Origin: Vitrella brassicaformis CCMP3155 | Taxonomy: Eukaryota > Protista > Chromerida | NCBI GenBank assembly: GCA_001179505.1 | Contig: CDMY01000496.1 | Location: 1,179 to 65,178, forward strand | DNA length: 64,000 nucleotides | Direction of reading: 5' to 3' | In this document: piece by piece, positions 8,820 to 64,000 of the stretch | Layout: each line of letters begins with the position of its first letter | Position numbering within the stretch: the first letter of the stretch is position 1 | Translations under genes and position numbers: made by a program | The notes under the pieces: generated by a model | Databases searched by the model: none | What the model was told of the DNA's origin: nothing | What the model saw: only the letters and a program-made list of their open reading frames with translations

Positions 8820-9015
8820 GATGGATGCTGACGGGTTGCAATCGATTAGCAAGCTAGATGCAGCTAGTGCGCGTGATAACGTTCCTGCCGACAGACGTGG
8901 CGAAGAGAGTCGACGACGTGGAAGTCGCTGAGAAGTCGAAGTGCTCTTCAGATGTGATGAAGGTGGGATCTGAAGACCTGGTCTCAAGCCGAGACAAGGA
9001 GAGAAAGGGGAGGGG

Positions 9016-30133: not shown

Positions 30134-31028
30134 TCACTCCATGCCCCCCTTTGTTGCATTGTTGTCCATGCCCATGTTGGCAAAGGCCGTCTCGATGTCG
30201 GGGGTGATGACCATCCGCTTCTGCACCGGACCTGATCCATGAGACACCCAAAACACACACGCGCACGTGTCAACCATCATGCATGTGCATCTGCATCAGC
30301 AGCTGCACACCATACCGAGAAAGGTGAGCTCAGAGCTGCCGACCACGCAGCCGACATCCTGGTGACATACACACACAGAGAGAGGGGGCAGCGACATGCT
30401 TGCGTCTGCGTCGTTTCGTTTCTTTTCGTTTCGTGTTGTGTTGTGTGCGCGTGCCTGTGCGAATTGGCATTCGGACCCCTGGTCGATGTTGAACAGGTGG
30501 TCGCCCAGCTGCAGCTTCACCCGGCCCGACTTGTATATCAACAACTTGCCTGTAGTGTGCACACACAGACGTGTATAAACATCCACCCACGCAGATCAGC
30601 CGATGGCGTTGTTTGCCGGTCGGTTTGCGCGGGTACCTAGTTTTCCCTCTGGTAGCTGGTCGATTGAAGAGCTCATGTAAGCCGGGGGCGGCTGCAGCTT
30701 GCTCTCCTCCTTCTTGCGACCTCCCTTGCGCGACGACGCATCTGTCCACAATCACACCAACCAACACACATGCACTCATCCACCCATCCATCCATCCATC
30801 CATCCATCCAGAATCTACCCACCTGCCGCTGGCCTCTTGTCCTCCTCTGCACCATCCTGCTGTTGCTGCTGCAGCTCGTCGCTGTCTGCCGATGTAGGTG
30901 GCTGTGTTGCCGCCCGGCCAGCGGTGGACCTGTCCCTGTCGATGGCGGGCAGCCTGTTGGGGAACTGCATGATGAAGAAGTCACGGTCGTCGCTCCCGCC
31001 ATACGCTGGCGGCAGCCTGACACACACA

Positions 31029-31063
<35 letters not shown>

Positions 31064-36142: not shown

Positions 36143-38306
36143 GCCATCTGTGCGCGTGTGTACTTGCGCGTGTGTGTGTGTGTGTTATATCAACTCAGGC
36201 GGTGTTCCGTTGCCAGGCCAAGGTCGGCACCGGTCCGCTGAACAGCCAGAGGGTGTGCATGTACAAGGAAAATGTACCCGTAGAGGAAGGTAATCTACAC
36301 ACACACAGACAGGATAGATGCAATCAATGCCTACATGTGGTGGGGTGGGGTGGATTTGTGTGTGCAGGTGGGAAGGTGGTCGAGCCCGAGAGCTGTCCCG
36401 CCTGCAAGAAGACCAAATCCATGACACTCGTCAGCTGACCTCCACCACACACACTCTCTGTCTGTCTGTGTGCAAATGACATGTCCCTCTGTGTTTGTGT
36501 GGATGGATGGATGGATGTGTGGATGTGTGGATGCAGTCTCACGGCGAGTGCATCTTCAGCGACAAGCAGCTCATCAAACTCCAGGTGCCCACGCGCGGAG
36601 CTGCGTACAACACAACACACACACACACACACGTACTCATGCAATGCAGGAGTCGCCCGAGGACATGCCGGCCGGCGAGACGCCTCAGACCAGTGCCTAT
36701 ACCCACCCCTACCACACACCCATGCGCGAGTGTGTGTGAATGTGTCGTTTTTTTTTCATCAGTTCAAGTGTTTGCCTACAGCGACCTGGTGGACTTCGCC
36801 CTTCCCGGAGACAGAGTCGAGGTCACAGGTACGTCACGCGACCGCCTTGCCCACACAACCACAACCACACCCACACACCCATTCATCCACACACAGGTGT
36901 GTATCGGTGCAAGCCACTGCGCGTGACGAGGCGCGTCCGGACGCTCAAATCCGTCTTCAAAACGTACGGAATATACATCGAGACCCCCCCCCCCCCNNNN
37001 NNNNNNNNNNNNNNNNNNNNNNNNNNNNNNNNNNNNNNNNNNNNNNNNNNNNNNNNNNNNNNNNNNNNNNNNNNNNNNNNNNNNNNNNNNNNNNNNNNNN
37101 NNNNNNNNNNNNNNNNNNNNNNNNNNNNNNNNNNNNNNNNNNNNNNNNNNNNNNNNNNNNNNNNNNNNNNNNNNNNNNNNNNNNNNNNNNNNNNNNNNNN
37201 NNNNNNNNNNNNNNNNNNNNNNNNNNNNNNNNNNNNNNNNNNNNNNNNNNNNNNNNNNNNNNNNNNNNNNNNNNNNNNNNNNNNNNNNNNNNNNNNCCCC
37301 CCCCCCCCACACAGAGAGAGAGGGGGGCAGAGAGAGGGCGAGGCGCCAATGTGAGTGTGCGTGTTCCAATGGCTGACAGGTTTGTTGACGCGTACAACAT
37401 CCAGAAGACGGCGAGCGAGCGGATGCGCATCGCAGAGAACGACGACCAGGCCCAGCCAGGGGGCGATGAGGTCGACCTGGGCTTCACTCAGCAGGAGATC
37501 GACAAATTCAAAGAGATAGCCGACATGGGGGAGGTACGCGAGCCATCAACACACAACACACATGACCTCGATGGATGGATGGATGGCTGGATGGATGGCA
37601 TCCATAACAGGGTGTGTACAAGGTGCTGGTCAAGAGCTTCGCCCCGAGCATCTGGGAGAATGACGACGTCAAAAAGGGTACGTGTGTGTGTGTGTGTGTG
37701 TGAGAACAAAAGAGCACTTGCCGGATGCACGCATTTCTCTGTGTGTGTTGGGGTAGGTTTGCTGTGTCAGCTGTTCGGGGGCAATGCGTGCTACAAGACG
37801 CGCAACAAAGACGGCAAAGTCACCTGGAGAGTCAGGTCAGTCTGAGTACATGTGCTGTGTGCTGTGTGTGAATGTGCTCCGACGCCGTGCCGTGTGTGTA
37901 GGGGTGAGATGAACATTTTGTTGTGCGGCGACCCCTCGACGGCCAAGTCGCAGCTGCTGGGATACTCACACAAGATTGCACACAGGTAGTTAAATACCTG
38001 TGAGACCACACGAGAGAGCGAAAGCATACCACGTCTCAAACACATGGATGGACAGGGCCACGCAGGCGACCGGCAGAGGCACGTCGGCCACCGGCCTGAC
38101 AGCCTACATACTCAAGGCAATCTCACAATCACACAATAAGACCAACACGGAAACACACACATGGATGGCTGGCTATGTCTCTGCGTGTGTGTGTTGATAG
38201 GATCCCGAGACCAAGGAGGTGATTTTGGAGAGCGGCGCACTCGTACTCGGAGACAGAGGTAACCCTCCCCAACCCAATTTCCCATATTCATCTCTTTGCG
38301 TTTCTT

Positions 38307-38342
<36 letters not shown>

Positions 38343-40292
38343 TGTGTGTCACCAGGTTTGTGTTGCATCGACGAGTTTGACAAGATGGACGACAGCGCAC
38401 GGTAGAAACCAGCAGCTCACCGTGCACACGCACATGCATTCACCTGAGAGTTGGGCTATGTGTGTGTGTGTGAAGTGCGATATTGCACGAGGCGATGGAG
38501 CAGCAGACGGTGTCCATCGCCAAGGCCGGCATGGTCTGCTCACTCAACGCCAGAACCGGTGGGTGCCTGGTGGGGAGTCTGTGCATCCCGAATGGGTGGA
38601 TGGATTTTCTCTCTTTCTCTCTCTCCTGCGTGTGTGCACATTCAGCTGTGCTCGCGTGTGCGAATCCCGTGCTGTCGCGATACGACCCCACCAAAGTACA
38701 CACAGAGACACAGACACACACAGGTGGATGGGATGCCCCTTTGTCCTGTGTGTGATGTGTGTGCAGTCGATAGTGGCCAACATCAACCTGCCGCCCACGC
38801 TGATGTCGCGATTCGACCTCATCTACCTCATGCTGGACAAGGCAAACAACCAACCACACACCCACTAGCCTCCACACACACACACACACACACAGGGGGG
38901 GAGACAGACACGGACACACACCACTCTCTGTCTCTCTGTGTGTGTTGGGTGTGGTGTGTGTGTTCAGTCCAACGCAACGACCGACGAGAAGTTGGCCCGG
39001 CACATCGCCCTCCTCTACTGCGGCGATGCGGCATACAACATGGGGGATGGCGAGGGAGGGGAGGGGGAGGGGGAGGGGGAGGTGGAGTTGCTCGACCGCA
39101 AGCTGCTCGCAAACTACATCAGCTATGCTCGCACGTACGCACACACAAAGGGACCAATGGGTGGGTCAACACACGTCGTGGGTGTTGTCTTGTGGGTGGG
39201 GTGTTGTTGTGCAGTCACGTGAAGCCCCGGCTCACGAATGACGCCGCCGAAGCACTGCAGGACGTATGTATGCCCGTTGATGCCCACCAGCACTCACTCG
39301 CCCATAACTCTCTCCCTTTCTCTCTGTCTGTCTGTCTGCCTGCCTGTCTGTCTGTGGGTATGCTTGTCTACAGTCCTATGTTGCGATCCGCCAGGAGGGA
39401 GGGAGCTCGCGAAGGCAACCATACACACATCCACTCACCCACCAGTCTATCTTCGGGTGTGTGTATTGGCTGCACGCAGGAATATCACGGCAACCCCCCG
39501 TCAGCTCGAGAGTTTGATCCGCATCAGCGAGGCCCTCGCGCGTATGCAGCTCAAGGAGATGGTGGAGCCAGCACACGTGCGGGAGGCCGTCAGGTAACCA
39601 CACACACACAGACAAGACACACACACACGTGTTTGTATCTCTCTCTGTGCGTGCAGGTTGATGAGGGCCGCCACGTTCAAAGCCGCCGTCGACCCACACA
39701 CAGGCACCTATACACATACACACACACACACACACACGCGGAGAGAGACGGAGAGAGAGAGAGAGAGAGAGAGACGCGGATGGATGGATGGATGGGTGCA
39801 TCTGTCTGTTTGTGTGCAGGTCGCATAGACATGGACGCGTTGTTCACGGGCACGAGCAACCTCGCGAGAGAACGGACCAACAAGATCGAAGAGGCCACCG
39901 TAGAGGCCCTGGTCCGTCTGCCACCGAGCCACATACATTCAAAAACACATATATCCATGTGTGTGTCAGAGGAATGCCCCCAATGGGATGAAGGCCGAGG
40001 ACCTGCTGCGCGAAGTCAACCAGACCCTGGTACGTACGCATTATTGATTGACGCGTCCGTGGACGAGAGCAAAGCTCCGATCTGTGTGTGGCGTGGTGTG
40101 TATTTAGACGGCTGAGGAGCTCGAGACCCTCGACCAGATCGAATTTGACTCGCACCTGGCGGGACTCGTCCGCAACAGTACGCACAGACAGAGAGAGAGA
40201 GAGAGAGCGACCCATCCATCCATGTGTGTGTGATTGCAGGTGTTATTCGTGAGACAGCACACAAGGTGTACCTCCTGGTGGTCACGGAGTGA
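34501..40292 (+). CDS. MCM4: DNA replication licensing factor MCM4
   Basis: [39 protein letters not shown], Walker A GDPSTAKSQ (37927-37950), IDEFDKM, HEAMEQQTVSIAKAG, arginine finger MSRFDLIYL, ITATPRQLESLIR and DPHTGRIDM. More than 20 short introns. Confidence 0.93.
36997..37296. other. Assembly gap (300 N) inside an MCM4 intron
   Basis: Flanked by poly-C on both sides. The exons on either side join in frame (KT|FVDAYNIQK), so no coding sequence is missing. Confidence 0.8.
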
Positions 40293-47267: not shown

Positions 47268-49296
47268 ATGGACAAGTGACTCACGCAATCAGTCACTGCT
47301 GCAGACACACAGACACAACACATGCATCTATCGATTTCAACGTGCACATCTTCCAGGCATACCTTTTGGACTCGTTCGGCCCCCTCCGCTCCCTCTGAAA
47401 TCTCCCTCCCATCTGCGAGCTAAGCTTGCAAACCTGCCGTGCGCGTGAAGGGTGGTTACGACGGCGGAGGAACCAAACAGGAGGAAGAAGCGACGTGTCG
47501 ATGGTGCTGATGGAGATCTCCCCGACAACGATGGAGATCTGCACAAGACCGCCACCTCGCCCCCTCCCGCCCTCCCCCTGCACATCGGCGACGCTGCATC
47601 CCCGAGTGCCCATCTCTACGGCAGCCCTGAGGCGAATGCGCCATCGTACCAGTCGACCAAGCGGCCTCTCACGCCGCCCCTCACCCAATGCTCTGACAGT
47701 GAGTGCCTGCTCGTGGATGTCGTCTTTGAGGCCGTCTGGGCCTTTCCGCACACCGACGTCGTCGAGGAGGTGGTGAGAGAGCCGGGCAGTCTGTTTGTCG
47801 GTGACCGGAGATGCCATCTCGACAACAGGTGGGCAGAGATCTCTCATTTCTGTCACAGGTTGGGCCACGTGTCTGTGTTGTGTGTTGTGTTTGTTCATTC
47901 ATCTTTGTGAGCATCGCTGAAGGGCACTCACTCTTTCTTGATGTGTTTGTTGTGTGCGTCAGGCATGTCGGCTCATCAAGCAGTGGTGCCGCTGACCAGC
48001 AGCCAGCCACACCAGACACCATCCAATACCAGTAGCCCACCCACACCCACCCCTTCACACACACAACCCTACACACAGCGCGTGGCATACTCGTGTGTAT
48101 GTGTGTGCGTCAGAGAGGGAATCGTTGAAGCTCGGCGGTGAGGGACGCAAGGCTCTGATCAAGAGGCTCAGAGAGTTCCACGAAGGCAGCAAGGACCTCG
48201 TGGTGACCTCACCAACCACACTCAGACGAGGCACTGCTGGCCGGTGTGTGAACTGCCCTCTTGTCTCTCCGGTGGCTTGGTTTGCTGGTTGGGTGCAGGA
48301 GGAGACGCTGCTCGATCAAGGTCTCAAATACGGCGAAATCCGCAACGCCACTCTGCCACAGGTAGACAGACACAGACACAAACACACACATGAGCATCTG
48401 TGTGTGTGTCTGTCTGTCTGTCTGTCTGTCTGTGTGTCTGTCAGCTGCTCAAGATGGCTTACGTGTGTGGTCTGTGGGAGGAGGCCGTGCAGCTGCACCG
48501 CGACCGCATGAAGCGATGCACACCCAGACCACTGACCCTCCCACCGCCCCCAGGCTGCGGCCTCACCGCACACCAGCGGCCCCCGCCATTCCCCTCCGGC
48601 CCCCGCCATTCCCCTCACCCCCACTAGTAAGCCCCAGGAACCATGGCCACATCCACTGGTCGCCCGGAACCATCTGAGCGTGCGGGCGCAGTGTGCCTGC
48701 AAGCCAACAGGGGATGTCCCCTCACCACAGGTGCCGCAATCGTCGCACTTGAAGGAGGATCACCCCGGCAGCCGCCTGGCGCACGAGGGCGTCGGGGCAC
48801 GCCGCGCCTGGTGTTCTCCGAGAACGTCAAGGACTTCTTCAACAAACACTACCAGATGACGGAGCCGCCCTCCGAGTCGGTGTTGCTGGGCGGTAGCCTG
48901 GAGGAGCTGACCAGACCAACCACGAAAACCGTCAAGCGGAAACATGTAGGCGCTGAACAAGGGGGGAGAGAGGGCTGCGGGGTCGGACCACTGTTGTCTG
49001 TGTGGGTGGCGGCCATCGTGTATCGCATCTCTGGAGCAGTCGGCCATTCGTGCGAACCACAGCACTCCCTCGGCTCGGCGGCAGTCGCGTACCAGGAACA
49101 GGACGAGGAGCAGGCTGACGTGCAGTCCATCTTAGCGCCCAAGGCCAAGCAGAAGAAAACGGCCAAGAAGAAGCCAAAGGCGGCAGCACCGAGGGGCTGG
49201 GCGAGGGCGAAGGCCAGAAGCCGAGGCAGGGGAGGAGGGGGAGGAATTGTTGGCGGCATCGACAGCGGCAGCACAGCCGGCGGCGTATTATGGTGA
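47268..49296 (+). CDS. Lineage-specific hypothetical protein with NLS-like basic stretches, 3' end 49296 or 49348
   Basis: MDK|VVTTAEEPNRRKKRRVDG..., shared module VDVVFEAVWAFPHTDVVEEVVREPGSLFVGDRR, helical exons (ESLKLGGEGRKALIKRLREFHEG; LLKMAYVCGLWEEAVQLHRDR), and a Lys-rich tail. Confidence 0.55.
47713..47858 (+). repeat. 146-nt coding module, copy of 19930-20075
   Basis: gtggatgtcgtctttgaggccgtctgggcctttccgcacaccgac...gcagagatctctcatttctgtcacag, ending at a splice donor. Confidence 0.9.
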
Positions 49297-49821
49297 CGAC
49301 GATGAGGACATGAGGATGGCAAGCGATCACGACAAGGCGGATGAGTGAGAGGAGGCGGGTGGTGTAGATAGTCGTGGCTGACTTCTTGATGCATGGACAC
49401 GTGCGTGACTGACCGCATTCATGGGTTGCGTGAATGCGTTCATTCGCAGAGCACAAAAGTCCGCTTCCAAGCGGCGGGCTGCATGCAGGCCGCCTAGGGT
49501 ATTCCATGAAACCGCTGGGAAGGGTGCCGTCTCTCTGAACGTACTGAAGGGCACGTCCACAGACAACCTGCCGGCGATGCAGCGCGCCGGCCTCTACTCA
49601 TAGCCTCTGCTGCTTGCCAGGTACGATACGCATCAACAAATACTGCGTGCATGCCTGCTCCCTAGTACAGATCAGATCCCGCCATGTTCCATTACCTTCG
49701 TCCCCTCCTCAGGCTGATTAACTGTATTGTGGCCATGCCCAGGGAGATCCCCTCCCGGGACGACCCATCCCAGATCATCGTGGTTGATTGACTTATCTCT
49801 CTTCCCTTCTTGTGTTTGGCC

Positions 49822-52190
49822 ATGCCGAACACTCAGAGCTCATCGTGGAGCAGCTGGGAGGTGCCCGCCAGGCCAGTGCCTGAGGACCTCAAGCACCTGC
49901 ACCAGCTTTATGGCGACTCGGCCTTCGGCAAGACGCTCGCCAAGTGGGCCCAGGAGATACCTGACGCGGCTGCCATCACGTGGCTCAACGGTGATGGGGA
50001 GCCGGCCGAGGTGTTCACATACAGCGAGCTCTTCAGCAAGGTGCAGCGGCTCGGCGCCTATCTCACCGAGGATCTGGGATTGGAGATGGGTGACCGGGTG
50101 ATCCTGTGCTATCCGCCCGGCGCGGACTTCATCCTCGCCTTCCTCGCATGCCTTTACACGGGCATCGTTGCGGTGCCTGTGTATCCCCCCGCCCCCAACA
50201 CCACCAACATCGATGTGCCGCGCTTCTGCGACATCGCCGAGAACGCTGGGGTGCGCTATTCGCTCACCAACACCGCCTACCAGAAGATAGCCCTGGTCGT
50301 GGGCACGCTCAGCAAGGACAGCAGGTGGAGATCTATCGAGTGGATACTCACCAGCGACGCATTCAAGAGGACGGGTGCCGACAAGGGTGGTGACGAGCAC
50401 GAGACCGTCTACACCCCCCCGTGCATCGGCCTGAGCGACATCGCGTTGCTGCAGTTCACGTCGGGGTCCACATCGACGCCCAAGGGCGTGATGGTGACGC
50501 ACGGCTCGCTGCTGCACAACGTCCACTGCTGCATCACGGCCTACGGCTGGGACAGCAAGATCGACGACCCCACCATCCCCAACATCACAGCGACGGGGCA
50601 GCCCTACAGTAGGATGCGCGAGATAATGATGCAGCGTCACGAGATCAGCAACCGGGTGCGGGGTCACCGCATGCGGTGCTTCTCGTGGCTTCCCGTCTAC
50701 CACGACATGGGGCTCATCGGATTCCTCTGCACGCCCCTCTTCTTTGGATTTGAAGCTGTCCAGATGTCGCCGCTCGACTTCGTCATGAAGCCGCACCTGT
50801 GGCTACAAGGTGCCTGCACAAATCCCGAGCCGACCACCGAGTGATGCTCATGTGGTGTTTGTGTGTGGTTTTATTCTCATGGAATAGGCATGAGCCGATA
50901 CAAGGCTGGCGCGTGCGCGGTCCCAAATTTTGCCTTCGAGTTGGTGACGCGCAAGATGCCCGACAGCGTGTTTGAGGAGCTGGACCTCAGTCACGTGTCC
51001 GGCTTCCTGTGCGGGGCAGAGCCAATCAGAGGGGCCATTGTAGATAAATTCGTCAAGGTGCGTGTGTGCGCGTGAGTGGGTGCAGGCGGCCAATGATGAA
51101 TGAAAGAGAACACGATGGCTGTCTGTTTGTGTCTGTGTTGTTGTCCATTCAGAAATTCGCGAGGAAGGGTGTGACTCGCAGCAAGGTTCTGCCAGCGTAT
51201 GGGTTGGCCGAGAACACCCTGTGCGTGTCGGCCCGCAAAGACATTGACAGCGAGCCGTTCATCATCAGTGTCAACGCCGAGAAATTGAGAAACCAAGTAC
51301 AAGAACAAACACATAGCAGACATCCGTTGCACACATCTGCGTGCGTGTGGCCAGGGTGTGGTTGAGTTGGTGGATGAAGCTGACATGGATGGCAGTCATG
51401 AGGGCGAGTACCAGCGGCTCGTCGGATGTGGCGTACCCCTCTCTGGAATAGACGGTACACACACCACTGACCGACGATATCGATCACGAGATAGGCATAG
51501 TTGTACCGCCTGCTTCGTTCAGTTCGCATTGTTGACTCCGAAGCGATGAAGGAGCTGCCGGAGGGCCAATGTGGTGAGGTGTGGGTCATGTCTGGCAGCA
51601 CGGCCCGCGGCTATTTCAACCAGCCCGACGAGGCGCAGGAGTCGTTCCACGGGCAGTGCATCTACCTGACAGGCGACAAGTCGGAGCCCTTGTACCTGCG
51701 GACAGGTGACATGGGCTTTTTCTACAAGGGAGAGCTCTTCATCGCCGGGCGCATCGAGGACATGATCATCGTCAATGGTCGCAACTTCTTCCCGCAGGTC
51801 ATCGAGGAGGCCGCAGAGAGCTGCGAGTCGGTCCGCAAGGGGTGCGTGGCGGCCTTCTCGCTGGAGGTGGATGATCAGGAGCGGCTGGGGCTGGCGGTCG
51901 AAATCAAGATGGAGGAGGGGAGCGGCTTTTCGATGATCTGGGGACGGCTGTCGCAGCTGCGGCAGGCGTTCACCAGCACGGAGTACAAGGCGATTAGTCG
52001 CGAGATATGCAAGGTCGTCTCGGTCAAGATCGGACTTCCCGTCTTCCACATATGGCTGCTCAGACCAAGAACCATTCCAAAGACGACAGCAGGTACATGT
52101 ATGTGACATACACACATGCCGACGGAGAATGTCACATTCATCTATTGTTGTCCATCTTTCTTCCCTGTCAGGCAAGGTTCGGCGCTCCAA
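49822..52190 (+). other. PKS loading fatty acyl-AMP ligase (FAAL) domain
   Basis: LLQFTSGSTSTPKGVMVTH, WLPVYHDMGLIG, PNFAFEL, CGAEPI, AYGLAENT, FAAL-type insertion ISVNAEKLRNQGVVELV, LRTGDMGF and IPKTTAGK. Confidence 0.9.
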
Positions 52191-55100
52191 GACGCGTGAG
52201 GTTCTCCTTGACAACAAGGACCTGGCAGGTCTCATCTGGGATGAGGTCGTGGGGGAACCCGATGCGGACAAGAAGGAGGTGTCCGCAGCTGCTCGAGAGA
52301 GGCCGCCCGTCGCTCCCTTTGCGACACGAAAGGCAGCACGGCACGGCGACGGGAAGGACAAGGGCCTTTCAGTCGCACAGAGGAGGGTCCAGTCTGCAGT
52401 GATGGCGTCGGCGGGCAAGATCTTGGACACCGACGTATGCGACTTCGACACGCCCCTGCACAAGCTGGGTGTCGACTCCATCAGGGCGCTGGAGTTCGCC
52501 GAGGACGTGTCGAGGGAGCTGTCAATGACTCTCGAGCCGGCGTTCGTCTTCAACCAGCCAACTATGAATGACATCATCGACTTCCTTGTCGGGGAGCTCG
52601 AGGGCCGGGCCGCCGAGGAGCCCGCCAAGGAAGCCACACTCGCGAGCGGCATCCGGGCAGACGAGCCGATCGCCATCGCTGGGGCGGCGTGTCGGCTGCC
52701 CGGCGGAGTGACAACCCTTGCATCCTTCTGGGAGCTGCTTAGCACCCGCCGTGATGCGATAGTGGAGGTGCCGCTGACCCGCTGGAACATCGACGAGGTC
52801 TATGACGCCGACCGTGACATGGATGGCAAGATGTACATCAGAGAGGGAGGCTTCATCGACGACGCAGAGATGTTCGACAACGCCTTCTTCAACATCGGCC
52901 CCGCTGAGGTCAGCTGCATGGACCCCCAGCAGCGGCTGATGCTTGAAGTGGGCTACGAGGCCTTCCACAGCGCGGGCCTCAGCCGCGAGAAGCTCATTGG
53001 TCAGGACATGGCCGTGCTCATCGGGTGCTGCTCCTTTGACTGGTACGACGTATACAACCAGACTGGCCTCAGCGTGAGCAGCTACAGCGCGACCGGAGTC
53101 GCCGCATCAATCCTCTCCAACCGCATCTCCTACATCCTCGGTCTCAAGGGCCCCTCCATGACCATCGACACGGCATGCTCATCTTCATTGGTGGCCATGG
53201 ACGTGGCGGTCAAGGACATGCGCATGGGGGTGTGCCGCGGTGCCCTGGTGGGAGGCGTCAACATGATGCTCAATTCACAAGTCACGGTGGCGTTGTGCAA
53301 GGCACGCATGATGGCGCCAGACGCCAGATGCAAGACGTTTGACGCCAAGGCCAACGGCTACGTGAGGGGCGAGGGTGGGGTTGCTATCATCCTCAAACAA
53401 CTCTCAGACGCATCACCCGACCTGGTCGGCGTGTTGGCCTGTCTGAGAGGCACAGCTGTCAACCACGGAGGGAAGACAGCCAGCCTGACAGCGCCAAGCG
53501 GTCCAGCCCAGCAGCAGGTCATCAGGTCGGCGCTGCACCAGGCCGGCCTCCAGCCATCATCAATCGACTTCGTGGAGTCGCACGGCTCGGGCACGTCACT
53601 TGGCGATCCAATCGAGGTGAATGCGATCAAGGCCGTGTTCGCCGGCGGGCGAGACTCGAAACTCCCTCTCCTGCTGGGCGCCCTCAAGACCAACATCGGG
53701 CATCTGGAGGGAGCCGCGGGTATTGCGGGGGTCCTAAAGGCCGTACTCGTGCTGCAGATGAAGCAGGCGCCCCCCAATCTCCACTTCAACTCACTCAACC
53801 TGTACATCGACACCGAGGGCTTCCCGGTGGTCTTCCCCACCGAGCCCGTGCCGCTCGTCTCTGGCCTGCCCGCCAAGGACCGCATGGTCGGCGGCGTCAG
53901 CTCCTTCGGCTTCGGGGGCACGAGTGCACATGTCATCCTCGAGGAGGTGCCACTAGGTCTGACTCGCCAGTCCGAGGCTATCATGGAGCTGACCAAGTCA
54001 GGTGTCAGCCTCACGATCGAGACGTGCCTCGCCAAGCTCAAGGGCACTCACCAGTGGAACCACCGGAGCTTTCCGTGGGTCGAGGCGGCCCATCCTGCGC
54101 TCGGTCGCCGGCACACGACCCCGACCGGCCTGACCTTCGAAGCCACCCTGCGACAAGACCTCAAGGCGCTCATCCAGGACCACGTCGTCCTCGGTCAGAC
54201 ACACACACCTCCTTGCTGCTTGAAAAACACATCATGTGGCTGGCTGTGTTTCTATGTCTTGATTTGTACACAGGCGTGCCTCTGATGCCCGGCGCAGGGT
54301 TCATTGACATTATGGCCGGTGCAGGCCTGGCGGCTGCGCAGGCGGAGAGGGGCGCCAAGACGTCATCGGCGGAGGAGCTGGTACATCTGGAGGAGGTGTC
54401 GTTCGAGCGGCCGCTCATGCTGGCCAAAGCTGACGACAAACAGCCTGAGCTGGCGAAGATGCCCACCCTCCGTGTCACCGTCGAGAAGCAGGCGACCACC
54501 GATACCGACGCTGCCATGCCCCCCATGGCCGTCGAGATCTCCACACGGGCGCCAGGCGAGGAGGACTTCGTGCCGCATGCCACCGCCCGTTTGGTGAAGG
54601 TCGCGGGTGCGGGGGACGGCGAGAGAGACCTGGTGGAGGATCTCACGGCCCTCAAACACCGGTGCAACAAGGTCGCCCCAGTTACAGACTTCTACACGCA
54701 GCTCAAGGAGATCGGTGTGGCGTACGGTCCGAGGTTCCAGACGGTGAGGGAGCTGTTGGTGTCGGACGACCAGGCTCTGGCCCTGCTCAAGCTCGACCCG
54801 CCCATCAAGCCATTCGAGGGAGGCTTCCGGCTGCATCCCGCCATCCTAGACGGTGCGCTGCAGTCAGCCGCTGCGGTACTCGCGGCCGATCAGTCCGGCA
54901 AGGGGAATACCAAGGCACTTCTGGTGCCNNNNNNNNNNNNNNNNNNNNNNNNNNNNNNNNNNNNNNNNNNNNNNNNNNNNNNNNNNNNNNNNNNNNNNNN
55001 NNNNNNNNNNNNNNNNNNNNNNNNNNNNNNNNNNNNNNNNNNNNNNNNNNNNNNNNNNNNNNNNNNNNNNNNNNNNNNNNNNNNNNNNNNNNNNNNNNNN

Positions 55101-58100
55101 NNNNNNNNNNNNNNNNNNNNNNNNNNNNNNNNNNNNNNNNNNNNNNNNNNNNNNNNNNNNNNNNNNNNNNNNNNNNNNNNNNNNNNNNNNNNNNNNNNNN
55201 NNNNNNNNNNNNNNNNNNNNNNNNNNNNCGCGCCTAGTGTCAAGGAAGATATCGACACGTTGCTCGCGGAGGGACGAGGGGAGACGGTCATGTGTCTGCT
55301 TGGACTGAGCTCGGACGTTGATGCGCAGCACGTTCTCCTCGGGGCCATGCAAGTGGCAGCAGCCCTCATTGGCGGCGACTCGGGCTCGCAACACAACAGC
55401 GGTGCCCTCTTCTTCACGTCCAGCATCCACAGGATGCACGCCCGTGATCCCGTCGAGGGGCGACCGGTCCATGCGGGCATCTGGGGCATGCTGCGAACCG
55501 CGAGGCTCGAGCTCACAAATCAGAGGCTCGAGCGGCAGGATGCAGCTCGCCTCGTGACTGTGGATTTGGACGGACCAAGCTCGGCAAGATGGGAGGACCA
55601 GCTGCTCGGCGTCGCGGCCAACTCATCACGGCTCAGAACTGAGGAAGAGACGGAAATTGCCGTGCGCGCCGACGTTATCTACGCGCATCGACTGATTAAG
55701 AGCTCCCTTGTGGCGCGAGGGCCCGTTGAGCTGGAGCTGTCCGGGAGAGGATCGCTGAAGAGCATGATGAAGTTGCGCGCTCAAGAGCCTGAGGATCGGA
55801 GAGAGCTCGCGCCTGGAGAGATGGAGATCCGCGTGAGGGCTGCGGGACTCAACTTCCGGGACCTTCTTCTGGTGCTAGGCGCTTGTGCAGCTGCTGAAAG
55901 AGTGTGGGTCGATGCCGGAGGGGAGTGCAGTGGGACCGTCACGCGTGTGAACGGCGATCCATCTGATGCCGTGTTCAAAGTGGGGGATGAGGTGTATGGC
56001 GTAGTCAGTGGGTGCCTCAAGACCTACGTCACGACCAGAGCCGCTGGGCCAGTGGTCCTGAAGCCGCCCAACATATCCTTCGGTGCAGCTGCTGGGCTGC
56101 CGCTTATCGTCGGCACGGTGGAGGTCTGCCTTCGAGACATCGCACACGTGAAAGCTGGCGACCGTGTGCTGATCCACGCTGCGACAGGTGGAGTTGGATT
56201 GACCGCCGTGCAGCACTGCATCAGGGCAGGAGCCATCGTCTACGCGACGGCCGGCAGCGACCGCAAGAGGACTCTCCTGCGACATCTAGGCGTCCAGTAC
56301 ACCACAAGCTCAAGAGACCCGCATCGCTTCCAGTCGCACATGCAATCGTTCCTGGGAAACGAAGATCGGCTGGATGTCGTCTTGAACTGCCTCAGCGGTC
56401 ACTTCATCGGCTTCTCTTTGGCGCTACTGCGTCCCGGTGGATGGTTCGTCGAGATCGGCAGGCGAGGCATCTGGAGCCGGGAGAAGATGGCTGAAGAGCG
56501 CGCCGACGTCAACTACGAAGCTATTGCTCTCGACGTCATGATCCGTGACGACCCTGTGTGGTTCCGCGGCATGCTGACCCGCATCAACTGCATGGTCGCG
56601 ACGGACCAGCTCACCCCTCCTCCCCTTCACGCCTTCGATCTCAGCGACGAGCACGAAGGGGGCTCAGCAGCGTTCACCTTCATGCGGCGAGCGCTCCACA
56701 TCGGCAAGATTGTCCTCACCGTGCCCTCTGCTCCGGGGCTCGAGGTGATCGCGGCACGAACGACGGAGAAGCGTTCACGGAGCTGCCCTTATGCGTACGT
56801 GATCACTGGCGGTCTTGGCGGCCTTGGTCTCGTGGTGGCTGCATGGCTGATCGAGCATGGGGCCAGGAGCATCATCCTTGCATCGCGACGAGGCCAACCT
56901 ACTCAGGAGATGCAGGAGAGCAAAGAATGGCAGCGGCTCACGACCGTCATGCGGAGGGCCGAAGCGACGGAGGGGTCGTCCATCACTCTGCGCGCAGCCA
57001 AGTGTGACGTGAGCTCCATCGAGGACTGCCGCGCCCTGATCACGCAAGTCCAAGAGGAGGGACTGGTGCCCAAGGCGATCCTGCATGCTGCTGGCACATT
57101 GAGTGACGCAGGCATCGGCAATCAGACGCTCGAGACCATAGCGGATGTCTACGGCCCCAAAGTCCAGGGCGCCTGGGCCTTCCACGACCTACTCATTGAG
57201 AGCGGCGTGCAGGCCGACACCTTCCTGGTCTTCTCGTCCATTGCTGGNNNNNNNNNNNNNNNNNNNNNNNNNNNNNNNNNNNNNNNNNNNNNNNNNNNNN
57301 NNNNNNNNNNNNNNNNNNNNNNNNNNNNNNNNNNNNNNNNNNNNNNNNNNNNNNNNNNNNNNNNNNNNNNNNNNNNNNNNNNNNNNNNNNNNNNNNNNNN
57401 NNNNNNNNNNNNNNNNNNNNNNNNNNNNNNNNNNNNNNNNNNNNNNNNNNNNNNNNNNNNNNNNNNNNNNNNNNNNNNNNNNNNNNNNNNNNNNNNNNNN
57501 NNNNNNNNNNNNNNNNNNNNNNNNNNNNNNNNNNNNNNNNNNNNNNNGCTGGTCTGCTGGGCAACTTCGGCCAATCGAACCATGCAGCAGCAAACGCATG
57601 CCTCGACGCTCTGGTGACATACCGACGATCCCAGGGCCTCGCGGGCTCCAGCATCCAGTGGGGCGCCTGGACAGAGCAAGGCAAGGCGGCACAGCTCGTC
57701 ACTCAACGACAGCTCGAGAAGATGGGCTTCGCTGCCGTCACCAATGACATCGGCCTTCGGAGCCTCTGGGCCGTCCAGGCTCACATCGCAACCATCGACG
57801 TCATCGGCTGCCAGCCCATTCGTTTCGAGACCTACTTCCGTGTCATCCCCCGCACGCCCTTCTTCTCCCGTTTGGAGGTCAAGGAAGCCAGGTCTAAGGC
57901 TGGCGGACCTTTCTTGGCTCGCACAGCTCTTTGTGAAGAGGGCTGGGCCCCGTTGGAGGATCCCGTCAGCCGCGAGGCAATGAGAACGGCTCTGGACAGT
58001 GTGGGGGTCCTGCTCACTCACGGGGCCGCGGAGCTGTATGATGCTCTTCGGCAAGAGGAAGGCCTCAAGCATGTGGAAGTGTGTTCGAGCGTGGAGGCAC

Positions 58101-61100
58101 TGGCAAATGCAGCGAGGCGTCTCCGTGACACACCAGGAGGGGTCGTTCTAGTGCATCGATGTCGTGATCATGCGGAGGATGCAGCGCATCAGAGGGAGCA
58201 GCTTTGCGCTTCTATGAAGGCGCTGAGGTCTTCGGGTCCTGATATGCCTGTGGGGGTTCTCGTGTTGGTCGATAAGCCTGATGGTGATGAGCCCTCTTAC
58301 GACAGCTTCCTCTCATTCAAGAGTCTCGAGGGCGGTGATGATGCCGCAAAGTGCACCATCCGGTCGCTGGATTTCATCGGGACGCCTCCATCCCTCGCAG
58401 CGACTGCCTCAGTGACGTGCACGGTCATCAGCATGATGGTCTCGAAGACGCAAGACGGACCCGCTGGGTCCGAAGTGCCATGGGCCTATCGGGACGGCAT
58501 GCTGTTGGCACCACGTGAGTATCGGACATTGAGGGACATCCCTCTGTCCATCGACCTGTTCCCAGCTGCCCTCCTGTCGGACACAAGGACATCCTCAGGC
58601 ACGGGAGTGCACGTCAAGTGGGCAAACGATTGGCAGGTGGCACACAGCAGCACACCAGCTTCCTCACCATCCGCGCACCAAGTGGTGATGTGCATCCATG
58701 CACTGGCCCTTCCGCCCTCGGCACAAGACGCCGATGATCGCCTGGCTGGTCCCTTGGCATGCGGCGGCATTGTTGCGGAGGTCGGAGATGCCGTTTCACA
58801 GCTGAAAGTGGGCGACACGGCGGCTGGCTGGCTTGAGGATGCTGCACAACAGGTCAGAGCGGACAGGGCCGTCACGGATGCACGCCTTCTGAAGCGCATC
58901 GATACCACTGAGACGCCGCCAGAGGGCAGCTGGACACTCGTCGGGCATCTCGAAGCATCAAGGCGGAATCTCGGGGCCCAGGCGGCTGTAGGCGAGAATG
59001 GGCTTCGCATGCTGCTTGACAGTGTCACCGCAGATGGTCGGGTGACGGTTTGTGAAGAGGACGTGGAAGACACTTTCCGCCTGTCAGATTCCCTGGGGAA
59101 GCAGCGAGCGGACAGTGACGAGATTCTTGTCCTTCGAATCGGTCGAGGTGCTCCCGCTGGTGCTGTGGACGGCTCATCACCTCCACTGTCCCTGAGTGAG
59201 CACCTGTCCGCCTCTATTCAGCGTGCGATGGAGTCGGATGAAGCACGGCAGTGGGCTGATGGAATTGTGCAAGTTGAGGAGGCCTGTCGTGCATACTGTG
59301 AGTCGGCCATCAAGGCTGTCCGAGAAGCTGATGTGGTCCATCCACATCACCGCAAGGCGTATCGAAGCCTCGTCGACGCTCTGCGGGGCTCAGATCGGNN
59401 NNNNNNNNNNNNNNNNNNNNNNNNNNNNNNNNNNNNNNNNNNNNNNNNNNNNNNNNNNNNNNNNNNNNNNNNNNNNNNNNNNNNNNNNNNNNNNNNNNNN
59501 NNNNNNNNNNNNNNNNNNNNNNNNNNNNNNNNNNNNNNNNNNNNNNNNNNNNNNNNNNNNNNNNNNNNNNNNNNNNNNNNNNNNNNNNNNNNNNNNNNNN
59601 NNNNNNNNNNNNNNNNNNNNNNNNNNNNNNNNNNNNNNNNNNNNNNNNNNNNNNNNNNNNNNNNNNNNNNNNNNNNNNNNNNNNNNNNNNNNNNNNNNGG
59701 CATGGGCCTATCGGGACGGCATGCTGTTGGCACCACGTGAGTGTCGGACATTGAGGGACATCCCTCTGTCCATCGACCTGTTCCCAGCTGCCCTCCTGTC
59801 GGACACAAGGACATCCTCAGGCAAGGGAGTGCACGTCAAGTGGGCAAACGATTGGCAGGTGGCACACAGCAGCACACCAGCTTCCTCACCATCAGCGCAC
59901 CAAGTGGTGATGTGCATCCATGCACTGGCCCTTCCGCCCTCGGCACAAGACGCCGATGATCGCCTGGCTGGTCCCTTGGCATGCGGCGGCATTGTTGCGG
60001 AGGTCGGAGATGCCGTTTCACACCTGAAAGTGGGCGACACGGCGGCTGGCTGGCTTGAGGATGCTGCACAACAGGTCAGAGCGGACAGGGCCGTCACGGA
60101 TGCACGCCTTCTGAAGCGCATCGATACCACTGAGACGCCGCCAGAGGGCAGCTGGACACTCGTCGGCCATCTCGAAGCATCAAGGCGGAATCTCGCGGAC
60201 CAGGCGGCTGCAGGCGAGAATGGGCTTCGCATGCTGCTTGACAGTGTCACCGCAAATGGTCGGGTGACAGTTTGTGAAGAGGACGTGGAAGACACTTTCC
60301 GCCTGTCAGATTCCCTGGGGAAGCAGCGAGCGGACAGTGACGAGATTCTTGTCCTTCGAATCGGTCGAGGTGCTCCCGCTGGTGCTGTGGACGGCTCATC
60401 ACCTGCACTGTCCCTGAGTGAGCACCTGTCCGCCTCTATTCAGCGTGCGATGGAGTCGGATGAAGCACGGCAGTGGGCTGATGGAATTGTGCAAGTTGAG
60501 GAGGCCTGTCGTGCATACTGTGAGTCGGCCATCAAGGCTGTCCGAGAAACTGATGTGGTCCATCCGCATCACCGCAAGGCGTATCGAAGCCTCGTCGACA
60601 CTCTGCGGGGCTCAGATCGGGACGCTTCCACACGGAGTCCGAAGTTCTCTCTCGAGAGCGCTCCGCAGCAAGTGTCTCACGAGGCCAGCCTCGCGCAAGC
60701 TTGCAGCTCTCACCTGATCGACGTCCTGAAGGGTGCCGTCGATCCACTGGAGCTCATCTTCCCTGAAGGATCCATGGACTTCGCGACCGCCATGTACCAA
60801 GACACCATCCCATCACAGTTCAGCAACGGTGTGGTCATGGAGGTCGTCGACGCAATATGCAGACATCGGCTGTCAAGTGCCACCGCACAGCGAGTGCACA
60901 TCTGCGAGGTGGGCGCTGGCACTGGTGGCACGACCTCTTGCGTCCTGCCCAAGCTCGATGCCAGCCGGACGACCTACTTCTTCACTGATATAAGCGAGTA
61001 CTTCCTGCGCAACGCTGCCAAGCGGTTCGTCGACTACCCCAACGTTGACTACTGCCTGTTCGACGTCGAGAGGGATCCCCGTCACAGCGGCCTTGCGACA

Positions 61101-64000
61101 GGCATCTTCGACCTGGCGATTGCCGTCAACGTGCTGCATGCCACGCAAGATCTCCGTGCGACGCTTCGCAACGTGAAGGCGTCTCTGAAGCCTGACGGCC
61201 TTCTCATCATATCGGAGCTGACGCGGCACAGCTTCATGCTGCAGACAACATTCGGGCTGGTCGAGGGCTGGTGGCGCTTCATTGACTCGGACCTGCGGCG
61301 TGACGGTCCTCTTCTGCCCCAGTCCGGCTGGCAAAGGGCCTTCCACGACACGGGATTCGTCTTGGAGTACGCAACGCCCAGCGAGGGCATCTTCGGACAT
61401 CAGAGTGTCATGGTCGTGCGCAACGCAGCGGACAGCGGCGTTGCTGTGCCGAGACCCCTGCCGTCCAGCCCTGTCGTGACCTCAAGGAATCAATGCGTCC
61501 TGGTGTGCGGCGATATTGATGCTATTGCCTTGGCAGCAGCTCGAGCCCTCATTCAGCAGGGATGCAAGACCCTCGTCGTTGCCTCATGGGGACCGCCTCC
61601 TGCCAATCTGGCCGCGTGGGTGACTCACGTGTCTGACGGCATCCGCGTGACGGCCATGAGACTGCGATACGATGCACGAGATCGCGGCATCCGGTGCGGG
61701 GGTATGTCGTGGTGTGAAGCCTTGGCCAAGAGGGAGGGGCCACCCATCACGCGGTGTCTCTGCGTTGTGAATGGACAGTCAGCAGAGGACGACGACCAGC
61801 AGCTGATCCGGGCTCGATCATTGGTTGAGACCGTGCAGGCCCAAGCTCCTGAATCGACCGTCGTCACCCTCGAGGCATTGGGCAAGTTTACCGCAGAATC
61901 CCACACTCTCCCTTCTTCGCCTCTGGTTGAGGCTCTCAGCCGCACTCTGAAGGCCAAGCCCTCTCATCGATCGGCTCTCGTTCGATGGGATGCCTCGCTG
62001 CTTCAACTGGATGCCTGCTTCCTCACTGAAGCGCTGCAAGTGTCCCTGAGCTCGTCGCCCTCGCCAGGCGCCCGACACGTCTTGAGAGTGCAGCGAACCA
62101 GTCAGACGGAAAGGACGCCGCCTGCAGGAGAAGAGACAGGACGAACTCCAACGGCGGGAGTCATTGGCCTGAGTTCGTCACAGCTGCGATCTTACATCCA
62201 GTCGGTGGTAGTTGAGTCGGCGGCTGGTGTGTTAGGACAGGAAGTGGTCGACGTCACTGCGCCGCCTCTGGATTCCCCTCTGCAGGAGCTGGGCATCGAC
62301 TCACTCGGCGCCGTCNNNNNNNNNNNNNNNNNNNNNNNNNNNNNNNNNNNNNNNNNNNNNNNNNNNNNNNNNNNNNNNNNNNNNNNNNNNNNNNNNNNNN
62401 NNNNNNNNNNNNNNNNNNNNNNNNNNNNNNNNNNNNNNNNNNNNNNNNNNNNNNNNNNNNNNNNNNNNNNNNNNNNNNNNNNNNNNNNNNNNNNNNNNNN
62501 NNNNNNNNNNNNNNNNNNNNNNNNNNNNNNNNNNNNNNNNNNNNNNNNNNNNNNNNNNNNNNNNNNNNNNNNNNNNNNNNNNNNNNNNNNNNNNNNNNNN
62601 NNNNNNNNNNNNNNNGATCGCCTGGCTGGTCCGTTGGCAAGTGGCGGCATTGTTGCGGAGGTCGGAGATGCCGTTTCACACCTGAAAGTGGGCGACACGG
62701 CGGCTGGCTGGCTTGAGGATGCTGCACAACAGGTCAGAGCGGACAGGGCCGTCACGGATGCACGCCTTCTGAAGCACGTCGATACCACTGCGACGCCGTC
62801 AGAGAGCAGCTGGACACTCGTCGGCCATCTTGAAGCATCAAGGCGGAATCTCGGGGGCCAGGCGGCTGTAGGCGAGAATGGGCTTCGCATGCTGCTTGAC
62901 AGTGTCACCGCAGATGGTCGGGTGACGGTTTGTGAAGAGGATGTGGAAGACCCTTTCCGCCTGTCAGATTCCCTGGAGAAGAGGCGAGCGGACAGTGATG
63001 AGATTGTTGTCCTTCGAATCGGTCGAGGTGCTCCCGCTGGTGCTGTGGATGGCTCATCACCTGCACTGTCCCTGAGTGAGCACCTGTCCGCCTCTATTCA
63101 GCATGCGATGGAGTCGGATGAAGCACGGCAGTGGGCTGATGGAATTGTGCACGTCGAGGAGGCCTGTCGTGCATACTGTGAGTCGGCCATCAAGGCTGTC
63201 CGAGAAACTGATGTGGTCCATCCACATCACCGCAAGGCGTATCGAAGCCTCGTCGACGCTCTGCGGGGCTCAGATCGGGACGCTTCCGCGCGGAGTCCGA
63301 AGTTCTCTCTCGAGAGCGCTCGGCAGCAAGTGTCTCACGAGGCCAGCCTCGCGCAAGCTTGCGGCCCTCACCTGATGGAAGTCCTGAAGGGTGCCGTCGA
63401 TCCACTGGAGCTCATCTTCCCTGAAGGGTCCATGGACTTGGCGACCGCCATGTACCAGGACACCATCCCATCACAGTTCAGCAACGGTGTGGTCATGGAG
63501 GTCGTCGACGCAATATGCAGACATCGGCTGTCAAGTGCCACCGCACAGCGAATGCACATCTGCGAGGTGGGCGCTGGCACTGGTGGCACGACCTCTTGCG
63601 TCCTGCCCAAGCTCGATGCCAGCCGGACGACCTACTTCTTCACTGATATAAGCGAGTACTTCCTGCGCAACGCTGCCAAGCGATTCGTCGACTACTCCAA
63701 CGTTGACTACTGCCTGTTCGACGTCGAAAGGGATCCCCATCACAGCGGCCTTGCGACAGGCATCTTCGACCTGGCGATTGCCGTCAACGTGCTGCATGCC
63801 ACGCAAGATCTCCGTGCGACGCTTCGCAACGTGAAGGCGTCTCTGAAGCCTGACGGCCTTCTCATCATATCGGAGCTGACGCGGCACAGCTTCATGCTGC
63901 AGACAACATTCGGCCTGCTCGAGGGCTGGTGGCGCTTCATTGACTCGGACCTGCGGCGTGACGGTCCTCTTCTGCCCCAGTCCGGCTGGCAAAGGGCCTT
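49822..64000 (+). CDS. Giant modular type I polyketide synthase, FAAL-primed and AT-less, truncated by the window end
   Basis: Introns at 50810-50887, 51058-51152, 51297-51354, 51455-51522, 52093-52171 and 54194-54273 give one continuous frame. Domain motifs for FAAL, ACP, KS, DH, ER, KR, C-MT and ACP are listed separately. The frame from 59721 stays open to the window end. Confidence 0.93.
52387..52590 (+). other. PKS ACP domain 1 (loading)
   Basis: DTPLHKLGVDSIRALEF...FNQPT, with the phosphopantetheine Ser codon at 52477-52479. Confidence 0.9.
52663..53946 (+). other. PKS ketosynthase domain with intact Cys-His-His triad
   Basis: EPIAIAG, DPQQRLMLE, TIDTACSSS (Cys at 53176), ESHGSGT, NIGHLEGAAG and VSSFGFGGTSAHVILEE. 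Confidence 0.95.
54091..54928 (+). other. PKS dehydratase domain
   Basis: HPALG, DHVVLG|VPLMPG (HxxxGxxxxP split by an intron), YGPRFQTV and HPAILDGALQ. Only about 48 aa separate it from the KS. Confidence 0.9.
54929..55228. other. Assembly gap (300 N) between the DH and the KR structural subdomain
   Basis: The flanks do not overlap. The frame is preserved across the gap, possibly by chance, and the true length is unknown. Confidence 0.9.
55720..56720 (+). other. PKS enoylreductase domain
   Basis: EIRVRAAGLNFRD, GECSGTVTRV, VLIHAATGGVG, VYATAGS, FVEIGRR and HIGKIVL. Confidence 0.9.
56795..57830 (+). other. PKS ketoreductase catalytic domain with a Tyr-to-His change at the YxxxN position
   Basis: YVITGGLGGLG, ILHAAGTLSD, KVQGAW, FSSIAG / AGLLGNFGQSNHAAAN (CAT at 57581-57583) and SIQWGAW. 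Interrupted by the 300-N gap at 57248-57547. Confidence 0.88.
58479..60620 (+). repeat. Near-identical 920-bp direct repeat inside the PKS (58479-59398 and 59701-60620)
   Basis: Both copies start catgggcctatcgggacggcatg and end ggctcagatcgg. Scattered substitutions, e.g. cagctgaaag versus cacctgaaag. The copies are separated by the 300-N gap at 59399-59698. Confidence 0.92.
60480..61420 (+). other. SAM-dependent C-methyltransferase domain of the PKS (unit 2)
   Basis: DPLELIFPEG, ICEVGAGTGGTT (60906), YFFTDISEYFL, FDLAIAVNVLHAT, LKPDGLLIISE and FGLVEGWWRFIDSDLR. Confidence 0.9.
62180..62315 (+). other. PKS ACP domain 2 (truncated by gap)
   Basis: IQSVVVESAAGVLG...DSPLQELGIDSLGAV, with the Ser codon at 62301-62303. 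Confidence 0.85.
62316..62615. other. Assembly gap (300 N) within ACP2, before repeat copy 3
   Basis: The left flank ends mid-ACP and the right flank starts mid-repeat, so real sequence is missing. Confidence 0.9.
62616..64000 (+). repeat. Third copy of the PKS internal repeat (matches 59958-61342)
   Basis: Collinear from gatcgcctggctggt to caaagggcctt, with private substitutions such as gcaagtggc versus gcatgcggc. Confidence 0.92.
63140..64000 (+). other. Second complete-looking C-methyltransferase copy (unit 3), runs off the window
   Basis: Near-identical to 60480-61342 at offset 2658: EVGAGTGG (63564), VNVLHAT and FGLLEGWWRF. Confidence 0.88.

Follow-up and report, generated by a model that had tools for sequence, protein, structure and literature searches.

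In bacterial trans-acyltransferase (trans-AT) polyketide synthases (PKSs), the usual place of a C-methyltransferase (cMT) domain is downstream of the ketoreductase (KR), just before the acyl carrier protein (ACP). A survey of PKS methyltransferases (MTs) gives the cis-AT orders KS-AT-MT-ACP, KS-AT-MT-KR-ACP, KS-AT-DH-MT-KR-ACP and KS-AT-DH-MT-ER-KR-ACP (KS, ketosynthase; DH, dehydratase; ER, enoylreductase) and the trans-AT leinamycin order KS-DH-KR-ACP-MT-ACP, in which an MT-ACP unit may follow another ACP, and it notes a resemblance between the structural half of a KR and the sequence that follows PKS C-MTs on the C-terminal side (PMC2613160). In algae, PKS genes carry near-identical duplications of modules and domains, with modules 89-98% identical (PMC4661987). 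Haptophyte trans-AT PKSs load through an ANL-ACP unit and contain many stretches that could not be assigned (bioRxiv 10.1101/2024.01.29.577497), and multimodular chromerid enzymes with MT domains have been mentioned, though their architecture was not described (PMC7464705).

Here we analyse a 64,000-nt stretch of contig CDMY01000496.1 from Vitrella brassicaformis CCMP3155 (the window) and, in it, one large PKS gene on the + strand that runs from about 49810 to past the window end. A sequence-only reading of the interval 57850-62315, which lies inside this gene, had proposed that an intact cMT sits within a second, decayed reductive loop, in the order psiKR-ER0-cMT-KR0-ACP. Our analysis confirmed that observation in part and lends partial support to its interpretation. 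The reading that we favour, with a probability of about 0.55, is that the region is the tail of an AT-less module primed by a fatty acyl-AMP ligase (FAAL), with the order KS-DH-psiKR-ER-KR-spacer-cMT-dead Rossmann-ACP, that this tail was recently duplicated, and that the module is the first extension module of an intron-bearing PKS of protist/algal type.

The C-methyltransferase and its module

The cMT is a real domain and, judging by its conserved motifs, appears to be catalytically intact and active. Its closest solved relative, as found by phmmer in the PDB, is the CurJ cMT (5thy), which matched residues 321-565 of copy B of the repeated cassette described below at E=7.7e-55, followed by DszA/DisA (6cca, 3e-37), AprA MT2 (1.5e-31), PksCT (1e-25) and LovB (~2e-23; 1.7e-23 before rounding). 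Foldseek with an AlphaFold2 model of the whole cassette (built on an alignment of 14 trimmed MT homologues) returned the same cMT structures at E-values from 8e-29, for 5thy, to 2e-18, and the predicted local distance difference test (pLDDT) was 80-96 over the MT core. In a 15-sequence alignment, 25 out of 25 invariant columns are kept, including the S-adenosylmethionine (SAM) motif at E403-G410, H480 and E506; the residues of motif I, ExGxGxG (E403, G405, G407, G409 and G410), all fall in invariant columns, and none of the substitutions in copy C touches one. The conserved His/Glu pair of cMTs is the catalytic dyad known from work on CurJ. The nearest sequence relatives of the domain are bacterial (34-44% identity), mostly with KS, AT, MT and ACP Pfam domains. 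The intact cMT of the sequence-only reading is thereby borne out, and the peptides that it quoted are present in the sequence.

Upstream of the cMT, the C-terminal part of the first KR (KR1) runs directly into the pre-MT segment within a single contig (contig A, 57548-59398), where about 430 residues of orphan, fast-evolving sequence precede the cMT. We found no ACP between KR1 and the cMT within this contig (no GxDS motif, no family match), in agreement with the earlier claim that none follows the first KR. RLSDSLG in the N-side flank, considered as an ACP-like motif, was dropped, as neither its context nor a family match backs it. Downstream of the cMT, a putative, catalytically dead Rossmann-type domain of about 185 residues leads to the ACP that had been placed at the end of the cassette and that is visible as its N-terminal half: ELGIDSLGAV aligns with the LGxDSLMAV of ACPs in at least 20 MT homologues, at their ACP positions, with Ser868 encoded at nt 62301-62303 and 47 residues of the domain standing before the gap at 62316.

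The window is a eukaryotic scaffold that contains short introns with GT-AG borders (70-100 nt) and is interrupted six times by a run of exactly 300 N; each contig piece was searched separately and no gap was bridged. The gene opens with a FAAL-ACP loading unit and continues with KS, DH, psiKR, ER and KR, as identified with NCBIfam models (Table 1). The FAAL is encoded in several exons, and at least three short introns, with GT-AG boundaries read in the sequence, interrupt it. There is no in-line AT between the KS (aa 179-613) and the HPALG motif of the DH, which follows about 40 residues on in the same open reading frame (ORF), and by this order of KS and processing domain the gene is an AT-less modular PKS of the trans-AT type. 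The DH is split by one GT-AG intron of about 80 nt at about 54196-54273. The first reductive loop (loop 1), with a hot-dog/DH model match at E=1e-8, is broken by the gap 54929-55228 and ended by the gap 57248-57547; the sequences flanking the latter, which separates the halves of KR1, fit the loss of only ~22 residues. Among solved structures, the N-terminal half of KR1 (56742-57245) is nearest to the KR of animal fatty acid synthase (FAS; E=7e-15), and then to mycocerosic acid synthase and bacterial modular PKS KRs.

Under our favoured reading, the KS would extend the FAAL-loaded acyl chain with malonate brought by a separate AT, and the cMT would use SAM to methylate the alpha-carbon of the beta-ketoacyl-ACP before reduction. 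KR, DH and ER would then reduce the intermediate, to give a 2-methyl-branched saturated chain. As for the dead Rossmann domain, it would serve only as a structural holder for the cMT, and the ER-like remnant might do so too, which is the part that psiKR and psiME have in FAS and in highly reducing PKSs (HR-PKSs).

Table 1. Features of the PKS gene in the window, in order of position (N flank and C flank, sequence on the N- and C-terminal side of the cMT)
Feature	Position (nt)	Strand	Evidence or remark
FAAL (fatty acyl-AMP ligase) loading domain	49810-52106	+	NCBIfam FAAL E=2e-34 and 4e-35 on two large ORF pieces
Loading ACP (GVDSI) and KS; DH starts directly after KS	52129-54195	+	KS model E=4e-169, aa 179-613
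First reductive loop, DH-psiKR-ER-KR (N-half)	54274-57247	+	Pks2-type PKS model E=3e-70; MDR/ER and SDR/KR models
Canonical KR C-terminal part (LDALVTYRRSQGLAGSSIQWGAW), start of contig A	57548-57898	+	PKS KR model E=2e-10, aa 1-99; AmphB KR E=5e-5
Orphan segment, formerly called psiKR-like	57899-58478	+	Open, coding-like (GC1 > GC2, GC3 0.61); no detectable relative
Cassette copy A: ER-like region and start of cMT lid, to contig end	58479-59398	+	98.5% identical to 59701-60620
300-N scaffold gap between contigs A and B	59399-59698	.	A and B dovetail across it
N-side flank of cassette B ('ER0')	59699-60446	+	GroES-lobe-like motif of ~40 aa at nt 59976-60092; no NADPH motif
C-methyltransferase: helical lid and class I SAM-MT core	60447-61427	+	phmmer, Foldseek, AlphaFold2, invariant columns
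Rossmann-like alpha/beta domain without glycine-rich motif ('KR0')	61488-62042	+	AlphaFold2 whole-cassette model; KR N-half profile
ACP N-terminal half (helix I and LGIDSL)	62175-62315	+	Aligns to ACPs of MT homologues; ended by gap
300-N scaffold gap over rest of ACP and B-to-C join	62316-62615	.	N run
Cassette copy C: ER-like motif region, lid, most of cMT core	62616-64000	+	96.8% identical to 59958-61342; open to window end

The segments flanking the methyltransferase

The sequence on either side of the cMT has no recognisable relatives. A word-indexed search of 5.8 billion proteins returned zero homologues of either flank, and six cassette peptides found no relative among JGI metagenome contigs. 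phmmer of the flanks against the PDB at E<=10 gave unrelated matches only, and NCBIfam at E<=1 gave only MT models on the cassette. The sole match of the N flank in an exhaustive phmmer search of 1.84 billion representatives was a Thr/Ala-rich, repetitive bacterial protein aligned in 9 stretches, which we judged to be compositional. The gene's own first loop fared no better as a relative: BLASTP of both flanks against it gave nothing below E=0.5, and Smith-Waterman alignment landed on the equivalences drawn by the sequence-only reading, but with z-scores of only 0.28 and 1.43.

At the same time, the flanks look coding (GC content at first codon positions, GC1, exceeds GC2). GC3 is 0.60-0.64 in the flanks and 0.58-0.64 over all segments without homologues (57899-62174), whereas the KS, the KR end and the MT core have values of 0.77-0.80. 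The ratio of nonsynonymous to synonymous substitution rates (dN/dS) between cassette copies is 0.74-0.95 in the flank, against 0.42-0.58 in the lid and core. Low GC3 and the dN/dS of the flank fit weakly constrained structural or spacer sequence, and the contrast in GC3 within the gene could serve to map constrained domains in this genome.

These results bear on the possibility that the flanks are a lineage-specific spacer or linker with no ER or KR ancestry, whose resemblance to reductive domains arose by chance, so that the module would be KS-DH-psiKR-ER-KR-cMT-ACP in the ordinary trans-AT order. The lack of homologues for either flank, the detection of the MT alone by NCBIfam and PDB searches, and the near-neutral evolution between copies together with low GC3 would all be expected of such a linker, and of the 30 candidate unknown stretches listed by the PKZILLA authors none was convincingly a domain (10.1101/2024.01.29.577497). 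We nevertheless hold a pure linker to be unlikely, as AlphaFold2, given a single sequence for the C flank, predicts a regular beta/alpha domain of six strands there, and as only 2-3 of 3000 shuffles exceed the profile scores described below, each match being at the structurally expected place.

On the C-terminal side, the AlphaFold2 model of the whole cassette shows six regular beta/alpha repeats over aa 598-781, with pLDDT of 60-80. A profile of the KR N-half (KR1 with human and pig FAS; all filters off, 3000 shuffles) matched VLVCGDIDAIALAAARALIQQGCKTLVVAS over 30 residues at nt 61497-61586, with 7.2 bits, a score reached by 3 of the 3000 shuffles. Model and match are in register (beta1 is aa 598-603) over beta1-alphaA-beta2 only. 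The NADPH motif TGGxGxxG is missing, with VCGDIDAIA standing opposite ITGGLGGLG, and a profile of the KR C-terminal part (the catalytic Ser/Tyr and LDAL...WG.W region) had no match in the C flank with all filters off. A by-eye mapping of LEALSRTLKAK...LVRWDAS onto LDAL...WGAW was rejected, the C-half profile being without a match. Alignments of the full model with the psiME-psiKR-KR tri-domain of human FAS and with LovB extend over 490-635 columns, whereas those with stand-alone cMTs cover ~310, which suggests that the post-MT domain too is matched by FAS and LovB. We think it probable that the post-MT domain is derived from a KR or psiKR. For the KR remnant with a degenerate Rossmann motif that had been described here, the Rossmann-like model, the missing glycine motif and the match to the KR N-half speak in favour, and the undetected C-half of a KR speaks against.

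On the N-terminal side, the two proposed remnants fared differently. The segment 57899-58478 had been taken for a second KR-structural-like (psiKR) domain, but its Smith-Waterman score against psiKR1 lies below the shuffle mean and is equalled or surpassed in 1986 of 2000 shuffles, and no homologues of the segment were found; that it is a psiKR is doubtful. In the segment taken for an ER remnant, an ER profile (ER1 and three bacterial PKS ERs, 4 sequences; filters and shuffles as above) matched LACGGIVAEVGDAVS.LKVGD at GroES-lobe positions over 40 residues, with 5.6-6.2 bits, and 2 of 3000 shuffles reached that score; the corresponding match in copy A is at nt 58754-58870. As had been claimed, the NADPH glycine motif is missing, with LLDSVTADGRV aligned where LIHAATGGVGL is expected, and no NCBIfam MDR (medium-chain dehydrogenase/reductase) model matched the cassette at E<=1. 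In a MAFFT alignment, which we use descriptively only, the N flank follows the ERs colinearly for roughly their first 200 positions, has SVTADG at the GGVG site, and then passes into the cMT lid. The lid is entered ~120 residues past the GroES-lobe motif, and a complete nucleotide-binding lobe is not present. We put even odds on the ER-like motif being a genuine remnant of an ER.

Several points weigh against our favoured reading. The ER-like signal covers no more than 40 residues and the KR-like one 30; both reach significance only when tested in a directed way with very small profiles, at spots first picked by eye in the sequence-only reading. For the N flank, AlphaFold2, applied from the start of the cassette onward, gave no fold (pLDDT <50 over aa 1-237); at so low a pLDDT the model neither backs nor refutes an ER fold. 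The modelling proposed earlier as a check on both flanks returned a Rossmann-like domain on the C-terminal side and no usable model on the other. Modelled alone, the C flank gave a poor structure (mean pLDDT 42), with which Foldseek found nothing at E<=0.001, the best matches being SDRs (short-chain dehydrogenases/reductases) at E of 0.03 or worse. The dN/dS values rest on 14 and 41 changed codons. Finally, the contig joins across 57248-57547, 59399-59698 and 62316-62615 are the scaffolder's and not observed sequence.

The full model put forward earlier goes further than ours: a second psiKR-ER-KR loop would have arisen by duplication, lost all of its cofactor sites and become a scaffold, with the cMT between the ER and KR remnants. 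In its favour are two weak, independent profile signals, with ER ahead of KR as is canonical, the Rossmann-like character of the post-MT domain, and the spacing between the WAYRDG...APRE strand and the CGGIV motif, which at ~83 aa matches the ~80 aa of loop 1. On the other hand, its psiKR-like segment is without support, there is no pairwise similarity to loop 1, at most about the first 200 ER positions are represented (and these are unfolded in AlphaFold2), the C-half of the KR is undetectable, and an origin from loop 1 is not distinguishable from any other. As the model needs the post-MT KR/psiKR, the ER remnant and the psiKR all three, we regard it as unlikely in its complete form.

The repeated cassette and the assembly gaps

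One 300-N gap (59399-59698) lies within the interval 57850-62315, and another (62316-62615) begins right where the interval ends. Self-comparison revealed that the interval contains parts of one cassette present in three near-identical copies (A, B and C; 96.8-98.5% identical), each on its own contig, with copy B spanning 59701-62315. The frame is open at 57602-59398 and, save for N runs, at 59700-63998, and all copies keep it open. Contigs A and B dovetail, the last 920 nt of A corresponding to the first 920 nt of B with 14 mismatches, no indel and 10 amino-acid changes (98.5% identity), so that the true size of the gap between them may be negative. Copy C begins inside the unit, without a dovetail to the end of copy B.

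The proposed 'ER remnant' is accordingly present twice within 57850-62315 and again from 62616 onward, and to arrive at psiKR-ER0-cMT-KR0-ACP one has to read from the front part of contig A on into the rear part of contig B. Its cMT, its ACP and the lack of an ACP after KR1 hold; the sequence-only reading saw neither the gaps nor the repeat, and its exact domain order is therefore not established.

Over the 663 nt common to all three copies, A and B agree against C at 20 sites, B and C against A at 4, and A and C against B at 6, which makes A and B each other's closest copy. Three distinct sequences over this length imply at least two real paralogous cassettes, unless ploidy exceeds 2. The cassette (ER-like remnant, cMT, dead Rossmann domain and ACP) is thus present in at least two, possibly three, copies that are 1.5-3.5% apart, which by analogy fits the recent duplication of modules or cassettes known in algal PKS genes. 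Every junction between copies falls in a scaffold gap, and both a direct tandem and a spacing that contains a KS are compatible with the sequence.

Part of this repetition may come from the assembly: contigs A and B could be the same cassette (alleles or an unmerged overlap), the gap 59399-59698 being spurious, in which case C might be a second cassette in tandem, or else a haplotig or paralogue put in the wrong place. We give this slightly less than even odds. The dovetail of A and B without an indel and their status as the closest pair (20 sites against 4 and 6) would follow from it directly. Elsewhere in the window, the exact 40-nt repeat on both sides of the 300-N gap 9016-9315 (8976-9015 = 9316-9355) looks like a k-1 contig overlap left unmerged by the scaffolder; from this duplication it follows that 300-N runs are placeholders and can stand for overlaps. 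Set against such an artefact are the three distinct sequences over 663 nt, which call for at least two paralogous cassettes unless ploidy is above 2, the start of C within the unit with no dovetail to B, and the 10 amino-acid changes that the 1.5% divergence between A and B includes.

The gaps might also conceal more than they show, with each cassette ending a near-identical KS-DH-psiKR-ER-KR module, so that the product would be a poly-methyl-branched saturated chain built by the logic of mycocerosic or phthioceranic acid. Gaps do break the DH and KR of the visible module, as would be expected of repeats, loop 1 best matches the phthioceranic-type Pks2 model, and algal PKSs offer precedents for the duplication of whole modules (PMC4661987). 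However, no second copy of a KS, DH, ER or KR is visible in the window, the gap in the KR fits the loss of only ~22 residues, and a 300-N placeholder would have to hide ~6 kb, twice, which leads us to rank hidden modules below the linker and the decayed loop, as rather unlikely. Least probable of all, in our estimate, is that the cMT replaced the nucleotide-binding lobe of an ER in a dead psiKR-ER-KR loop and that KS-less psiKR-ER0-cMT-KR0-ACP units stand in tandem, several MT-ACP cassettes serving one KS and one reductive loop. The former, if true, would add a new site to those at which MTs are inserted in megasynthases, and cassettes in direct tandem would form a KS-less MT-ACP repeat. Whichever arrangement applies, domain orders on this scaffold are not to be trusted across 300-N placeholders, and claims about architecture need gap-free sequence.

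Antisense ORFs of 153-238 aa lie over the cassettes on the minus strand (58486-59073, 59708-60295, 60873-61400, 62192-62908 and 63531-63992); they repeat because the cassette repeats, and they look like by-products of a GC-rich coding strand. Outside the gene, an inverted repeat of 166-178 nt (87-88% identity) has copies at 19897-20075 and 47713-47893, ~27.7 kb apart, the second ~1.9 kb before the PKS gene begins, and may be a dispersed repeat or transposon fragment. Microsatellite-type runs occur in many ORF translations at 1-48000 of the window (for example 30770-31819, 36481-37845 and 38451-40115), a sign that (TGGA)n, (CA)n and (GTCT)n repeats are plentiful between genes.

Comparison with known synthases

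Neither a non-catalytic KR-type domain after a cMT nor a cMT behind a KR in an AT-less system is new in principle, as both have precedents (PMC2613160). We found no description in the literature of an ER-like remnant upstream of a cMT or of a visible repeat unit without a KS, and neither feature is secure here; string searches of the literature returned no ER-MT or ER-KR-MT order, and KR-MT-ACP strings only in one prediction-server description. If the flanks truly are a dead ER/KR loop, reductive domains would have been recycled as a scaffold in a position not seen in FAS, HR-PKSs or bacterial PKSs, which would be useful for choosing MT graft sites in engineered synthases.

With the solved PKS cMTs (CurJ 5THY, DszA/DisA 6CCA, AprA MT2 6D6Y, PksCT 5MPT and LovB 7CPX), the domain shares the lid and class I core, the fold, ExGxGxG and the His/Glu pair. 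Its bacterial cMT relatives have a short distance from MT to ACP, whereas here ~250 residues, including the Rossmann-like domain, lie between them, and ~430 orphan residues lie upstream.

The sequence-only reading had set this locus against fungal HR-PKSs, in which the cMT lies between DH and psiKR. The contrast holds in that the cMT here stands after a complete psiKR-ER-KR loop, but the comparison is not the most apt one, because the gene is AT-less and a cMT before the ACP is usual in trans-AT systems. Animal FAS and fungal HR-PKSs (DH-psiME/cMT-psiKR-ER-KR-ACP, with an inactive ER in LovB) do share with this gene an MT fold followed by a non-catalytic domain of Rossmann type, here a putative one. 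KR1 is closest to the animal FAS KR, and on our reading dead reductive domains are kept as structure here as well. Unlike them, the gene has its complete psiKR-ER-KR loop first and the cMT after it, with a putative ER remnant before the cMT.

Bacterial trans-AT modules such as that of leinamycin are alike in having no in-line AT, a cMT downstream of the KR and an ACP as the next domain served (PMC2613160). The gene described here differs from them in being eukaryotic, in its introns, in-line ER and FAAL loading unit, in the long orphan flanks of its MT and in a cassette repeated at 97-98%. In this last respect it resembles algal PKSs, where near-identical units have also been duplicated within one AT-less gene (modules of Ostreococcus OluPKS3 at 89-98%, and an ACP duplication in Volvox; PMC4661987), except that the visible repeat unit here is without a KS and has its boundaries inside assembly gaps.

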